A stretch of DNA of 15,230 bases, from the sequence record KY579375.1. One strand, written 5' to 3'. The translations under genes and the position numbers were made by a program. Of the stretch, positions 2,637 to 7,011 are shown in pieces. The stretch's first letter is position 1, and every line of letters begins with the position of its first letter. The notes beneath the pieces are model-generated. The model searched no databases, was not told the DNA's origin, and saw nothing but the letters and a program-made list of their open reading frames with translations.

Positions 2637-3626
2637 TTAAATGTTCTGTCTTAGCCATTCTGCATACTTCTTATACTCCTTTTTCGCCAAAGTGAGTAAG
2701 TCCAGGTAATGCTTTGTCAAGATATTGCCGGGCGTCCTACCCTCTAAGAAGTCTACAACCTCACTGGGGATACCAAGTTCTAACATTTTTGTTGCGGTAA
2801 ACTTCCTAATGTATTTAGGCGGAACTAGATTAAGCTTCTTAACGTATTTATCCACATAAGCTTTAGAGATCTTAATCTTTTGAATGGGCGTTACGTGGAA
2901 TAAATAGAAACTCTTCTTTTGCCCCCTAGTCCAGTTGAGTATGTAAACACTAAAGCCGACCTCCTGCATTTCGTTTTGCGGGTCGTAATTATTAAGCACT
3001 CTGAGGGCTTCAGATTCCCTAGACCCTGACTCAAGTAAAAGCCGGTATAATAAATATAAATTAGGATATTGTTTGACCTTTGTCAGTGTTTCTTTTATTT
3101 CATCTAACACAGGTACCCTGAGGTCTGGTTTTGTCTTTTTCGGCTTAAGGTTCTGAGGAGGCTCTTGACCTAAAACAAGCTTATAGAAATTCCTCCATGC
3201 TTTTATACAATTATTCGATTCTTTTCTTCCTTGCTTAACACACGATATATATTTCTTTATTGTCTCTTCGCTGATATTCTTACTACGTAAAGCTAATTCG
3301 AATTTAAGTAAATCACTTGCGGAAATTTCAGAGTTGTTAGAAGACGTTAGATTAGAGTCAATTATTCTAACTCCTTTCAATTCTTCATAATTAGCAGTGG
3401 GGGTTTTAGGGGGTGTCCCCCCTAATGCGGGCCTTTCGAGCCCGTGACCCGGGTTCAAATCCCGGCCGCGGCACTTCATATCATAATATTCATTTACGAT
3501 TTGTTCTAAAGAACCAATGTAAGTGTGCCTTTGCTTACCATCATCACCGTTCTCTATTGAGTAAACATAATACTTACCTTTAATCTCTTTTACGTAGAAT
3601 TTAGAACCCACATAAAAGTTAGGCAT
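2637..3626 (-). CDS. int: SSV-type tyrosine recombinase (integrase, D335-like)
   Basis: Catalytic motifs GSRESE (R), KYIRKF (KxxR) and TKHYL (Y nucleophile); internal attP translated as CRGRDLNPGHGLERPA. Confidence 0.97.
   Translation of the reverse strand: MPNFYVGSKFYVKEIKGKYYVYSIENGDDGKQRHTYIGSLEQIVNEYYDMKCRGRDLNPGHGLERPALGGTPPKTPTANYEELKGVRIIDSNLTSSNNSEISASDLLKFELALRSKNISEETIKKYISCVKQGRKESNNCIKAWRNFYKLVLGQEPPQNLKPKKTKPDLRVPVLDEIKETLTKVKQYPNLYLLYRLLLESGSRESEALRVLNNYDPQNEMQEVGFSVYILNWTRGQKKSFYLFHVTPIQKIKISKAYVDKYVKKLNLVPPKYIRKFTATKMLELGIPSEVVDFLEGRTPGNILTKHYLDLLTLAKKEYKKYAEWLRQNI
3425..3474 (+). other. attP site = 3' half of tRNA-Glu(UUC)
   Basis: Anticodon stem CGGGC/GCCCG (3428-3432/3440-3444), loop CTTTCGA with anticodon TTC at 3435-3437, T-arm CCGGG-TTCAAAT-CCCGG, acceptor 3' strand CCGCGGC, discriminator A3473. 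There is no 5' half. The exact left boundary needs the host tRNA sequence. Confidence 0.93.
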
Positions 3627-4668: not shown

Positions 4669-5148
4669 TCACCTTCTTATCCTAGGGGAAAGCCTATCTA
4701 GTCCTCTTCTTCTTCTTTTGAAGTATTCTATATCCTCTGGCCTAATCTTTTCCTTTACTAGCTCTTCGGCTTCCATTAGACCTTTCTTACTTAACATGTA
4801 AGCATATTGTCCTCTTTTCATTCCACTAGCTATAATGATAAATCCTGCAAAGTAAAGATCTTCTACAGTGGCCATTATGAACTTACTATAAGGACCATAA
4901 TTGTAAGGATAAAAGTGGGGGTCCTCTACCTTGTATCCTTTGCTAGTGAGTTCTAACCAGAATACATACGCTTCTTTAACTAGTTTTGTGTTGCCGAATA
5001 TTGGTTTATCTTTATCGCACCATAATAAGAATAAGATTAAGTCACTCACAGTTAAGTCTACATCTTCAGCTTCCTCTATGGCTTTATCTAAATCGTCCCA
5101 TGAATATAATTTTGTACCATCTGGTAAAATCTTCCTAGGTTCAACCAT
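4669..5148 (-). CDS. SocA/Panacea (DUF4065)/YwgA-like winged-helix protein
   Basis: Motifs IFGNTKLVKEAY and FYPYNYGPYS, then a DL...G helix and a YxLSKKG wing; ATG overlaps the upstream stop (TGATG). Confidence 0.8.
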   Translation of the reverse strand: MVEPRKILPDGTKLYSWDDLDKAIEEAEDVDLTVSDLILFLLWCDKDKPIFGNTKLVKEAYVFWLELTSKGYKVEDPHFYPYNYGPYSKFIMATVEDLYFAGFIIIASGMKRGQYAYMLSKKGLMEAEELVKEKIRPEDIEYFKRRRRGLDRLSPRIRR

Positions 5149-5630
5149 CAGTTCACCACCAACCTCCTCAGTTCTTTAATCTTCTCAGTTAGTTCTCTCA
5201 TCCGTGCCGGGGGTAAAACATAAGCATTTGATTTCTTTTCCCAATTATTTTTCTCTATCATTAATAGTAGTTGTTCCAATTCATTTAGTAGTTCTGTGAG
5301 TTTTGTTAAATCCAACTTAGCCTCAGCTTTGGCCTCAGATTTTGACTCACTTTTACTTATATTTATATTGAATATTACATTATTATTTTCTGTGCTTTTG
5401 CTAATTATGTTTCTAAATTCAGATTTTATTTCGTCTGGAATTTTTATTCCTTTTTCTATTGCCTTTGCAACTATATACGCTGAGACTAACTGTCTGAGTT
5501 CAACAATATCTTCCGAATCTGGATCAAGTAATTCGTAAATTAAATAGATTTTCGCCGGAATCCTCACACTAAAGACTCTAGTTTTTTTGCTCTTCTTTGA
5601 TAATAATTTTTCTAAAAGCCCATCATCCAT
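5148..5630 (-). CDS. Hypothetical protein with RHH-like N-terminus and C-terminal coiled coil
   Basis: RVFSVRIP beta strand followed by helices; leucine heptads LTELLNELEQLLL; ATG 5630 has RBS AGGTGA (the track start GTG 5639 lies inside the RBS). Confidence 0.8.
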   Translation of the reverse strand: MDDGLLEKLLSKKSKKTRVFSVRIPAKIYLIYELLDPDSEDIVELRQLVSAYIVAKAIEKGIKIPDEIKSEFRNIISKSTENNNVIFNINISKSESKSEAKAEAKLDLTKLTELLNELEQLLLMIEKNNWEKKSNAYVLPPARMRELTEKIKELRRLVVN

Positions 5631-5635
5631 TTTTT

Positions 5636-5830
5636 TCACCTACCTGAAACTTTTTGAATGGGTAAATAGTAACATAACTTTACCCTCAATACGAAAGGGT
5701 ATAGGGGTATAGGGGGTATATAGTGTAAAAGTGTAGACAAAGTGTCTACACTTTTTTTATTAGTGGGGGTATAGGGGGTATAGTGTTTCGTATTGAGGGT
5801 AAAAGTGTGTTGTTGCTTACCCAGTTTCAA
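5636..5830 (-). CDS. Possible small hypothetical protein overlapping the repeat element
   Basis: TTG start overlaps the upstream stop (TTGA) and the ORF ends in AGG TGA, which forms the next RBS. Its composition (YTPYTP, YIPPIP) is dictated by the DNA repeats. Confidence 0.35.
   Translation of the reverse strand: MKLGKQQHTFTLNTKHYTPYTPTNKKSVDTLSTLLHYIPPIPLYPFVLRVKLCYYLPIQKVSGR
5679..5803. repeat. Concentric inverted repeats enclosing G(3-5)TATA direct repeats
   Basis: 18-bp perfect IR 5679-5696/5786-5803 and 13-bp perfect IR 5727-5739/5743-5755, both centred on 5741; five G(3-5)TATA units at 5697, 5704, 5712, 5765 and 5774. Confidence 0.92.
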
Positions 5831-6258
5831 AAAATTTCACCCCTAAATAAATTCAAAATTAGCTCTGCCACAATTTTTCCTTTTTCAGTTAGCTTATAGT
5901 AAATTCGAATGTCCCCGTTTACGCGATATCTTTCTACTAGTCCGTAATTTACAAGATTATTTAGATATCGCTTTGCATATTTCCCATTTGTCCTCAATAA
6001 TTCTTTAAATTTATCCGCATTAATTCCTTTGTTTGATCTATATAATATTAATAGTATTTTTAACTCCTTATTTTCTTTATGATATAAATATCGTAGTTCA
6101 TTCAAAACTTCTATTAGGCTTTTAGCGGAATACCTAGGTACTACCTCATCTTCAACTCTTTCCTCATCATCTTCAACTAATTCTTCATCTTCTTCAACTC
6201 TTTCCTCTTCTTCCTCCTCTACTCTTTCCTCTACAACTAATTCTTCATTTATGTTCAT
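5827..6258 (-). CDS. Winged-helix (MarR/PadR-like) protein with acidic N-terminal repeat
   Basis: YLNNLVNYGLVER...YYKLTEKG wing motif; 23 of the first 41 residues are D/E; ATGA overlap with the upstream gene and RBS GAGGTGA. Confidence 0.85.
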   Translation of the reverse strand: MNINEELVVEERVEEEEEERVEEDEELVEDDEERVEDEVVPRYSAKSLIEVLNELRYLYHKENKELKILLILYRSNKGINADKFKELLRTNGKYAKRYLNNLVNYGLVERYRVNGDIRIYYKLTEKGKIVAELILNLFRGEIF

Positions 6259-6437: not shown

Positions 6438-6511
6438 CAATTTATCAATCTGTCAATCTTTCCTTATAAATCTTTCTGTCTATCTATATCTCTTTCTTCA
6501 ATCTATCAATC
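6435..6511 (-). promoter_or_regulatory. T5-like early promoter with tandem GATTGATA-type operators
   Basis: TATA TTTATAAG at 6470-6463; three tandem 8-mers at 6458-6435 and two at 6511-6496; 23-nt block at 6465-6487 is an inverted 21/23 match to 6951-6973. Confidence 0.8.
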
Positions 6512-6892: not shown

Positions 6893-6911
6893 CTGTGTCC
6901 CCACAGATTAT

Positions 6912-6931
6912 TAAGAGAATTCTCTTATATA
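6912..6931 (-). promoter_or_regulatory. e73 promoter with overlapping 16-bp palindrome
   Basis: Minus-strand TATATAAG at 6931-6924; perfect palindrome TAAGAGAATTCTCTTA at 6912-6927. Confidence 0.7.
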
Positions 6932-6949
6932 TCTGCATCTTTATGGTTG

Positions 6950-7011
6950 GATTGATAGACAGAAAAATTTATATATGCAGATTGATAGATTGATAGATAG
7001 AGGGTCTGAAA
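6950..7011 (+). promoter_or_regulatory. T6-like early promoter with GATTGATA repeats
   Basis: Purine-rich BRE AGAAAAA, TATA TTTATATA at 6968-6975, GATTGATA at 6950, 6980 and 6988; ATAGATAGAGG at 6993-7003 resembles the SSV1 F55 site ATAGATAGAGT. Confidence 0.8.

Follow-up and report, generated by a model that had tools for sequence, protein, structure and literature searches.

A dyad-symmetric non-coding element between ORF18 and ORF17 of Sulfolobus spindle-shaped virus 3 as a candidate composite operator

The ORF18–ORF17 interval and its relatives

The stretch of DNA analysed here (the window) comprises sequence record KY579375.1 in its full length of 15,230 bp; it represents Sulfolobus spindle-shaped virus 3 (SSV3), whose circular genome it covers completely. 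Genes of SSV3 mostly overlap or abut, so that the genome is tightly packed, and the largest true intergenic gap (196 nt, 5631-5826) separates two open reading frames (ORFs), ORF18 and ORF17, both of which are encoded on the minus strand within a T5-like early operon. This gap is almost filled by a dyad-symmetric element of 195 bp, the right end of which overruns it by ~13 nt and covers the last codons of ORF18 together with its stop codon. Sub-sites of the element vary in step with the products of both flanking genes, and below we discuss it as a possible control region bound by these two proteins. The interval 572-838 was considered as a pseudogene remnant rather than true intergenic DNA, since ORF7 (839-1405 in the SSV3 record) is non-functional and has lost ~95 N-terminal residues. 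Homologous dyad regions of 165-260 bp are present in all relatives, and nine sequence types of them were aligned. The features of the locus, including the winged helix-turn-helix (wHTH) protein ORF18, are as follows.

5148..5630, minus strand: ORF17, 160 amino acids, proposed binder of the central boxes, with ATG at 5630-5628
5636..5830, minus strand: the "ORF64" frame with a TTG start, not a gene; annotated in SSV4 and SSV5, omitted from the SSV3 record
5645..5839, no strand: the whole dyad-symmetric non-coding element, 195 bp, almost filling the ORF18–ORF17 gap
5659..5686, no strand: O_L, TGGGTAA-N14-TTACCCT, half-sites 21 bp apart from centre to centre, changing together with O_R and the wHTH protein
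5679..5696, no strand: left arm of the perfect 18-bp inverted repeat, overlapping the inner half-site of O_L and reaching a conserved GAAAG
5697..5723, plus strand: left cluster of three G-run/TATA units, GGGTATA, GGGGTATA and GGGGGTATATAG; GTATAG..TAGT kept in nine of nine types
5727..5755, no strand: centre, made of AAAAG, box 1 TGTAGACA (5732-5739), AAG, box 2 TGTCTACA (5743-5750) and CTTTT, a perfect 13-bp hairpin
5752..5758, plus strand: T7 run directly after box 2, terminator-like on this strand and an A-run on the strand of the T5 genes
5765..5783, plus strand: right cluster of two G-run/TATA units, GGGGGTATA and GGGGGTATAG; GTATA(G/C) kept in all types
5786..5803, no strand: right arm of the perfect 18-bp inverted repeat, perfectly paired, with compensatory paired columns
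5796..5823, no strand: O_R, AGGGTAA-N14-TTACCCA, of the same half-site class as O_L
5827..6258, minus strand: ORF18, 143 amino acids, proposed binder of O_L and O_R, with an acidic N-terminal tail and a wHTH domain

The wHTH domain of ORF18 gives weak matches of the Lrs14/Sta1/MarR type. In the wHTH proteins of this group it is preceded by an N-terminal tail of 40-60 residues with E/V-rich repeats (EEVV units), and the SSV8 DNA that matches this tail (L003:2541-2617) was annotated as a "unique direct repeat element". For ORF17 the ATG at 5630-5628, which is preceded by the Shine-Dalgarno sequence GGTGA (5640-5636), is a more likely start than the GTG at 5639 given in GenBank and agrees with the annotation of SSV4. 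Its N-terminus is strand-helix-helix-like, its C-terminal domain is helical and separate, and the protein also has a basic tail. Two of its homologues, P0016 (JGI Ga0326767_005687) and P0020, come from sources of which one names such a homologue "mRNA-degrading endonuclease HigB" and another "predicted DNA-binding protein"; nothing in our analysis speaks in favour of the HigB name.

The wHTH gene, the element and the ORF17 gene, in SSV3 together with ORF16, form an accessory module. Each of the 14 fuselloviruses in the databases whose genome includes the T5 wHTH gene has the element at the same place, and a search for ORF17 homologues added 15 loci, every one of them with the element: one contig of Sulfuracidifex metallicus and 14 metagenome contigs, most of which are taken to come from hot-spring communities. 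It was the ORF17 protein that proved to be a productive query, while queries with wHTH proteins returned few relatives. In SSV2, ORF61 stands directly next to the D-63 homologue, and SSV1 is devoid of all these module genes. The motif cluster of the element was found in none of SSV1, SSV2, SSV6 and SSV9. With the element as a query, BLASTN gave no match in the plasmid collection and only close relatives among phages, and no covariance model of Rfam 15 matched the region 5640-5830 at E <= 1. A degenerate pattern, GAAAGRGTRTAN{1,4}GTATAG, was also run against viral, metagenome and genome collections and was abandoned: among the matches listed most were due to chance, and the real ones were confined to contigs already known (SSV4, SSV5, SSV8 and M.14.25-like).

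Three of the inspected contigs deserve a separate mention. The S. metallicus one (BBBY01000028.1, 13099-17850; L337) is a fusellovirus-like provirus fragment in another genus, with an ORF17 homologue (70% identical), a nuclease and a fragment of an integrase; its element is SSV3-like, while the wHTH gene is swapped for that of an unrelated 92-residue helix-turn-helix (HTH) protein. In NL01B.C01.03 (MK054221.1) ~95 nt of the left arm are duplicated at ~3100-3205 of the locus (L017) with an N at the junction, which is either a true tandem copy or an assembly artefact. The third, an unrelated soil metagenome contig (Ga0099791_10010473; L117), contains at ~2290-2560 an AT-rich stretch with GGTATAGAGGTAGACTGT-like units arrayed to its left and right, which looks like an iteron-type region of another replicon.

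Symmetry of the element and the coding test

A first-pass annotation of the window had reported at this place an outer perfect 18-bp inverted repeat (IR; TTTACCCTCAATACGAAA, 5679-5696 / 5786-5803), an inner perfect 13-bp IR with a 3-nt loop (AAAAGTGTAGACA, 5727-5739 / 5743-5755), a common centre of both at position 5741 and five same-strand G(3-5)TATA units, three and two, in the two 30-nt spacers. All these observations were confirmed, the repeats both in coordinates and in sequence. Scanning of the whole genome with a span of 250 nt showed that the 18-bp and the 13-bp repeats are the two longest perfect IRs of SSV3, and 5741 is the sole position on which two perfect runs of >=10 are centred. 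Among 100 genomes simulated with a Markov model, arms reached 15 at most and co-centred runs did not occur. The symmetry turned out to be wider than first noted: arms of 45 nt (5659-5703 / 5779-5823) are 78% symmetric, an additional pair of 14-nt arms lies at 5645-5658 / 5826-5839, and the entire 195 nt (5645-5839) fold into a single hairpin with a z score of about -12. DNA folding energies calculated for 75-80 °C were inconsistent and therefore disregarded.

Pairing of the arms is also maintained in evolution. Across six types 81.7% of the cells are paired versus 37-47% if the partner columns are slid, and 14 pairs changed on both sides; the value observed in this test was reached by 0 of 500 shuffles. 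Outer symmetry is kept in every type, because it is made of palindromic protein sites set as a mirror pair. The centre behaves differently. Here type D has no palindrome at all, type G and its relatives carry direct TGTTGACA boxes, and the z score of central pairing comes to -0.04 in type D and -1.0 in type E, while the TGTTGACA viruses have two non-Watson-Crick positions. Compensatory base-pairing at the centre thus holds between types A/B and C and not in all relatives. Loss of symmetry in relatives, named in the first-pass annotation as one observation that would speak against a functional site, is therefore seen for the inner repeat and is not seen for the outer operators, and the perfect inner hairpin cannot be retained as a conserved structure. 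Judging from this comparison, the 13-bp hairpin of SSV3 is probably a by-product of the inverted orientation of two boxes, and no cruciform would be required. DNA of hyperthermophiles, which possess reverse gyrase, is relaxed to positively supercoiled, and this disfavours cruciform extrusion.

The same stretch has been annotated as a gene in several relatives, among others as ORF64 in SSV4 and SSV5, D110 in SSV8 and F102 in SSV10, the latter being designated F111 in the paper on this virus, where it is described, by prediction, as a membrane protein with two transmembrane helices (PMC6080066). An open frame of 63-119 codons is indeed present in most relatives, and two PHROG families (phrog_29126 and phrog_26550) were built on such frames. 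Substitutions between relatives are, however, spread evenly over the codon positions (11/12/13, 23/22/31 and 22/18/20), and the ratios of synonymous to non-synonymous changes in the element frame are 4:20, 9:42 and 6:34 versus 22:27 and 33:30 in the flanking genes, which show the usual third-position excess. The frame starts with TTG or ATG, shifts in length, and in its C-terminal part differs between SSV3 and SSV17; the SSV3 record and metagenome contigs L342-344 have no gene call at the element, and a Pfam search with the ORF64 frame gave no match. It is therefore very improbable that the element is a real gene with only incidental symmetry, and the earlier statement that coding does not explain the exact co-centring is borne out. 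At the same time nucleotide identity in the RH/Lassen/M.14.25 comparisons is 0.76-0.88 for the element and 0.63-0.86 for the flanking genes. Since the element is more conserved than its neighbours and bears no coding signature, selection acts on DNA or RNA.

Co-variation of the sub-sites with the flanking proteins

The sequence GGGTAA-N14-TTACCC occurs in the genome of SSV3 twice (5660-5685 and 5797-5822), both times in the element, at an expectation of 0.02, and four half-sites fall into the scanned 199 nt (5628-5826) versus four in the other 15,031 nt. No operator copies were found at other SSV3 promoters. A CTGAGTA upstream of the T9 promoter of SSV10 was considered as an operator and rejected, as it stands in an ordinary promoter context and its SSV3 counterpart reads CTGAATA. 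Relatives have 4-8 half-sites per element, and all of them, four or more, change together from type to type. Each class corresponds to a particular recognition helix of the wHTH protein: TGGGTAA (types A, D and E) to RTNGKYxKRY, TGAGTCA/TGAGTAA (types B and C, with 6-8 copies) to KT(N/S)GxYxKRY, and GGGACT (types F and G) to HxxHKRMRQI, whereas CGGTAA is found in S. metallicus with its unrelated 92-residue wHTH protein. The spacing of half-sites, 21 bp otherwise, is ~30 bp in types B and C, i.e. longer by one helical turn in each of the two operators.

The centre can be read as two 8-bp binding boxes of the form TGTnnACA placed 11 bp apart, i.e. at one helical turn. In SSV3 TGTAGACA and TGTCTACA are inverted copies of each other, which gives rise to the perfect hairpin of 13 bp; SSV8 and SSV10 have the palindrome TGTTAACA as box 1 and as box 2, and in several metagenome viruses both are direct copies of TGTTGACA. 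Type D has in the centre a tandem direct repeat without a hairpin, and type E an unrelated GC-rich palindrome. The box type follows three residues in the strand-like N-terminal segment of ORF17, for which five states were registered (FSV, IGI, VSI, LAF and IEF). Thus, TGTAGACA/TGTCTACA is paired with TR(V/I)FSVRIP, the double TGTTAACA with TKVIG(I/V)R(L/I)P and the double TGTTGACA with TKVVSIRLP, and in types D and E the box and the ORF17 segment form further pairs, one peculiar to each type. The difference between these two types is seen in SSV17 and SSV13, which are near-identical over 1.2 kb apart from a few patches: the central 25 nt, the first ~30 codons of ORF17 and a few positions in the middle of the gene. 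Approximately 100 conserved nucleotides separate the patch in the centre from that at the 5′ end of ORF17.

Prediction of the box from the ORF17 sequence, with contigs fetched only afterwards, was right in seven of seven cases (VVSI with TGTTGACA and VIGI with TGTTAACA) in the context of any operator class. One of these contigs (L348) has a variant second box, TGTTTACA, and a recombinant in which a VIGI strand is joined to helix 1 of the G type also belongs to the set. All four combinations of the operator classes TGAGTCA and GGGACT with the box classes TGTTAACA and TGTTGACA were found; therefore, the operator and the box layers assort independently, each being coupled to its own protein. O_L and O_R always change together although the centre between them assorts independently, and O_L is coupled to the wHTH gene despite this intervening centre, which is poorly explained by linkage and well explained by direct recognition. 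In this respect the first-pass proposal of a cis-acting site under selection with binding proteins of its own is supported, since the sub-sites co-vary with both flanking gene products. As to the genes, the wHTH protein on one side is as described there; the ribbon-helix-helix (RHH) fold of ORF17, on the other side, is discernible only at the level of a pattern (xVxSVRIP followed by two helices) and was not confirmed, with no RHH match in Pfam.

ORF17 itself is mosaic. In M.14.25 (L005:1322-1798) it resembles SSV3 in the N-terminal part (74% over 36 alignment columns from the start), while its 60 C-terminal residues share 91% identity with their counterparts in SSV13 and SSV17. A recombination joint thus lies within the gene, which consists of two exchangeable domains.

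Superimposed on the dyad is a polar layer, made of G-runs located 5′ of TATA cores and of a T-run, all on the plus strand. It is the same in all nine types with one exception, type G, which lacks the G-run before the right-hand GTATA. The run of five to seven T residues keeps its place and strand in all types, including those without a palindrome. Half of the GGGTATA sites of the SSV3 genome (5 of 10) are units of the element, with 2.3 expected by chance. The first-pass annotation regarded these units as iterons possibly serving a neighbouring initiator; being the part that, apart from type G, does not vary between types, they do not behave as sites matched to a variable initiator protein. As transcription signals the TATA-like units are weak (GGGGGTATATAG and TTTTTTTATTAG), and they are accompanied by a terminator-like site formed on the plus strand by the hairpin and T7. 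For the G-run as a B recognition element (BRE), the T1/2 promoter of SSV3 (CGGGGGTTTAAAAA) served for comparison. At the T6 promoter of SSV3 (6940-7003) 8-bp TTGATAGA units of the same orientation stand on either side of the BRE/TATA sequence GAAAAATTTATATA. The neighbouring T5 promoter region (6904-6935) is a 16-nt palindrome. In plan this arrangement corresponds to the element, with other repeats. In SSV1, the RHH repressor F55 binds tandem-repeat operators at the T5, T6, Tind and Tlys promoters (PMC6080066, PMC9608457).

Possible functions and comparison with known systems

Based on these data one can suppose that the element is a composite protein-binding control region of an accessory early-gene module, present in one subgroup of fuselloviruses and bound by the two neighbouring products. 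We rate the chances of this statement as a whole at about even; in its narrower part, a platform for protein binding, we are more confident. The wHTH protein ORF18, encoded upstream, would bind both outer operators, and the N-terminal segment of ORF17 would occupy the boxes of the centre, where two dimers would probably sit on the same face of the helix, as co-variation suggests. By analogy, the polar layer (a BRE-like G-run, a TATA-like core and an oligo-T stop) may be recognised either by TBP/TFB of the host or by some conserved factor of the virus, and the assembled complex would then control transcription through or from the element. Autoregulation of ORF17 with the downstream T5 genes may be its target, or else a short plus-strand transcript, and variable protein/site pairs could serve as immunity-like specificity determinants among co-circulating viruses. 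The element is, most likely, a regulatory switch. Transcriptional control is favoured because both proteins are of regulator size, ORF18 has weak matches to regulators and no replication-protein domain was found; because fast-diversifying, reshuffled protein/site pairs are a hallmark of immunity-type switches; because the make-up of the polar layer recalls a G-run of the BRE type with TATA-like cores and a stop of oligo-T behind it; and because the T6 promoter of SSV3 follows the same plan, its SSV1 equivalents being reported as F55 operators. Experimentally, a Tn5 insertion at position 6453 of SSV10 abolished virus function (PMC6080066). It maps into the homologous left G-run/TATA cluster, 37 nt from the box centre, and is the only tested insertion within the element.

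Several points weigh against this interpretation. The lethal insertion may have a polar effect on the essential downstream gene D152. Location of an operator downstream of its own regulator gene (ORF18) is unusual, and no canonical Sulfolobus TATA box of the TTTAWA type was found sensibly upstream of ORF17 on the T5-sense strand, while such boxes are present in other SSV3 promoters. Transcript maps are confined to SSV1 and SSV2, both of which lack the element. Recognition helices of the wHTH proteins from TGGGTAA and TGAGTCA viruses are nearly identical, which makes this step of the co-variation weak, and physical linkage in a mosaic, recombining region could partly explain the co-variation as such. 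Finally, AlphaFold2 models of ORF17 have a low confidence (predicted local distance difference test) of 53-56, falling below 50 over residues 1-35 in one model and 1-41 in the other, and in hhalign comparison with CopG-like proteins of SSVs the strand was aligned at an insignificant probability of 0.6%.

A replication origin of this fusellovirus subgroup, the first of the functions initially suggested, is a serious though less probable alternative. In this case the wHTH protein and ORF17 would mark the origin at multiple sites as exchangeable specificity factors, melting or priming would take place at the AT-rich centre, where the T-run lies, and the short promoter/terminator unit of the plus strand might give a primer or an activating transcript; we give this detailed version the same, lesser chance. 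It is in line with the location in the largest true intergenic gap and conservation above that of the flanking genes in the RH/Lassen/M.14.25 comparisons, with a dyad of repeated, iteron-like sites (6-8 half-sites in types B and C) and with an AT-rich centre bearing a T5-T7 run with repeated sites adjoining it, as in theta/iteron origins. Matched protein/site pairs are typical of initiator/iteron incompatibility systems as well, and lethality of the Tn5 insertion in the SSV10 homologue would be expected, with the same reservation for polarity towards D152. SSV1 and SSV9 each have a conspicuous IR region of their own elsewhere: the longest perfect IR of SSV1 (16 bp, L019:5349-5477) brackets the A-rich Tind-Tlys region, a hypothesised origin, and in SSV9 a cluster of 22-24-bp IRs (L335:8241-8537) occupies a large non-coding region ~500 bp from a truncated wHTH gene. 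Both are unrelated in sequence to the SSV3 element, so that lineage-specific origin modules are conceivable; were the element an origin, lineages would carry non-homologous modules at different positions (the Tind-Tlys palindrome of SSV1, the IR cluster of SSV9 and the element of SSV3). Yet four viruses that have the DnaA-like B251 and other core genes in common with SSV3 (SSV1, SSV2, SSV6 and SSV9) are without the element, which therefore cannot be a family-wide origin. The B251 gene itself lies 3 kb from the element and is found in element-less viruses too. ORF18, ORF17 and ORF16 are devoid of domains of the ATPase, helicase, primase or Rep kind. A TCCA..TGGA dyad, as in origins of the ORB (origin recognition box) type, is apparently absent. 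The turning points of cumulative GC skew are at ~6900 and ~2700 rather than at 5741; the skew follows gene orientation and is uninformative on the origin. A separate stem-loop candidate, "Tori", was proposed in SSV10 (PMC6080066). A rolling-circle origin was rejected, as the loop has only 3 nt, type D is without the hairpin and types G and E have it in altered form, and the flanking genes have no Rep domain. All in all, nothing in the analysis demonstrates the origin, packaging or partition function put forward in the first-pass annotation; the element is missing in sister viruses, and the flanking proteins resemble neither an initiator nor a helicase or NTPase.

Improbable, in our estimation, is a centromere-like or packaging site, on the boxes of which an RHH-type ORF17 and the wHTH protein would assemble to partition or encapsidate the episome. 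A basic tail, an N-terminal DNA-binding part and a separate C-terminal domain make up the typical layout of ParR-like adaptors, and ORF17 with its basic tail and strand-helix-helix-like N-terminus resembles it; its C-terminal domain is exchanged as a module (that of type B is 91% identical to types D and E), the boxes are spaced by one helical turn, and diversification of specificity is typical of partition incompatibility. Known centromere binders include the RHH protein SegB in Sulfolobus and the HTH protein AspA in pNOB8 (PMC8682754). However, neither the module nor the other scanned genes yielded a partition NTPase, the S1 motif of SegB (GAAGAGTCTAG) is not present, and SSVs also persist in the integrated state. 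The satellites pSSVx and pSSVi are packaged by SSV1 and SSV2, which do not have the element, and this, if so, argues against a general packaging signal. A role at the level of RNA, either as a long stem-loop of the polycistronic T5 mRNA affecting processing, stability or translation of ORF17, or as a short plus-strand hairpin RNA ending at the T-run, seems hardly more promising and is slightly less probable still. The 195 nt do fold as a single hairpin on either strand (z about -11 to -12), with predicted energies at 80 °C of -15.7 kcal/mol (T5-sense) and -17.4 kcal/mol (plus strand), the two central mismatches of TGTTGACA viruses become G.T wobbles on the plus strand only, and the G-run/TATA units and the T-run always belong to this strand. 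Against it speak 35-41 arm mismatches of ~120 positions in T5-sense RNA of types B and C, absent or weak central pairing in types D and E, the concerted change of all four half-site copies, which base-pairing does not need, and the lack of an Rfam match; counting of wobbles by strand gave no support for a T5-sense RNA stem. Even less credible is the recent insertion of a mobile palindrome, be it a miniature inverted-repeat transposable element or one of another kind. Imperfect terminal IRs of 45 nt and a length of ~165-195 bp would suit it, but the position is fixed in every relative and divergence goes in step with them, no target-site duplication is seen at 5640-5644 / 5840-5844, and no further copy was found in the plasmid collection or the SSV3 genome, host chromosomes not having been properly searched.

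Whichever function is realized, fuselloviruses are model archaeal viruses, and as of 2026 no replication origin has been mapped in any of them (PMC6080066; PMC9608457; bioRxiv 10.64898/2026.06.17.732947). A stretch annotated as a gene (ORF64, D110, F102/F111, two PHROG families) is here re-read as a conserved DNA site, and probable DNA targets are assigned to two of the four essential, uncharacterised leading genes in the T5 operon of SSV10. The pairs give residue-to-base predictions, in which A corresponds to IG, G to VS and AG/CT to FS. Recombination of protein/site pairs suggests discrimination between self and relatives among co-circulating viruses, be it immunity, incompatibility or origin specificity. 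If the element is a true origin or a tightly regulated promoter, it may be of use for building Sulfolobus vectors.

Among known systems, the composite operator proposed here has a close counterpart within the same virus family. Operators of F55 in SSV1 likewise have a core flanked left and right by short repeats of one orientation, play a role in early-gene control and are served by a small viral regulator of the RHH type, the fold of ORF17 being assigned only at pattern level. There is no sequence similarity between them; F55 is unique to SSV1, while the element lies inside the T5 operon and not at a promoter, has no canonical TATA and possesses an additional dyad layer and a second, wHTH, protein. 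Origins of the iteron/ORB kind, such as lambda ori, theta plasmids and Sulfolobus oriC, share with it a dyad of initiator-sized sites, an AT-rich centre and adjoining genes of DNA-binding proteins, and differ in having what is missing here, an adjoining initiator ATPase or helicase and a skew signal, as well as in that sister viruses sharing the core replication genes do not carry the element. In ParR an N-terminal DNA-binding part is combined with a C-terminal partner domain, and parC is composed of two repeat clusters flanking a promoter core. Short box arrays and cooperative RHH dimers would bring the element close to such centromere systems, i.e. ParR/parC of R1 and pSK41, ParG of TP228, omega of pSM19035 and SegB (PMC8682754), although it has neither a partner NTPase nearby nor the SegB motif, and the RHH fold of ORF17 is putative.

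Another parallel is provided by immunity regions of phages. Repressors and operators are matched there, as in lambda cI-OR-cro or in immI of P22 with the RHH proteins Arc and Mnt. Operators between the genes of their binders (in the element, of the proposed binders), palindromic or paired boxes one helical turn apart and specificity pairs that diversify and recombine among related viruses are common to these regions and the element. The host of SSV3 is, in contrast, archaeal and uses TBP/TFB promoters, and the two genes are co-oriented rather than divergent. The accessible literature, outside of which some older fusellovirus papers fall, treats the stretch as a gene or leaves it unannotated, so that the element is apparently undescribed. 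A composite operator, or an origin-like site with the genes of its binders on either side, is a familiar kind of object, and the novelty lies in the instance.

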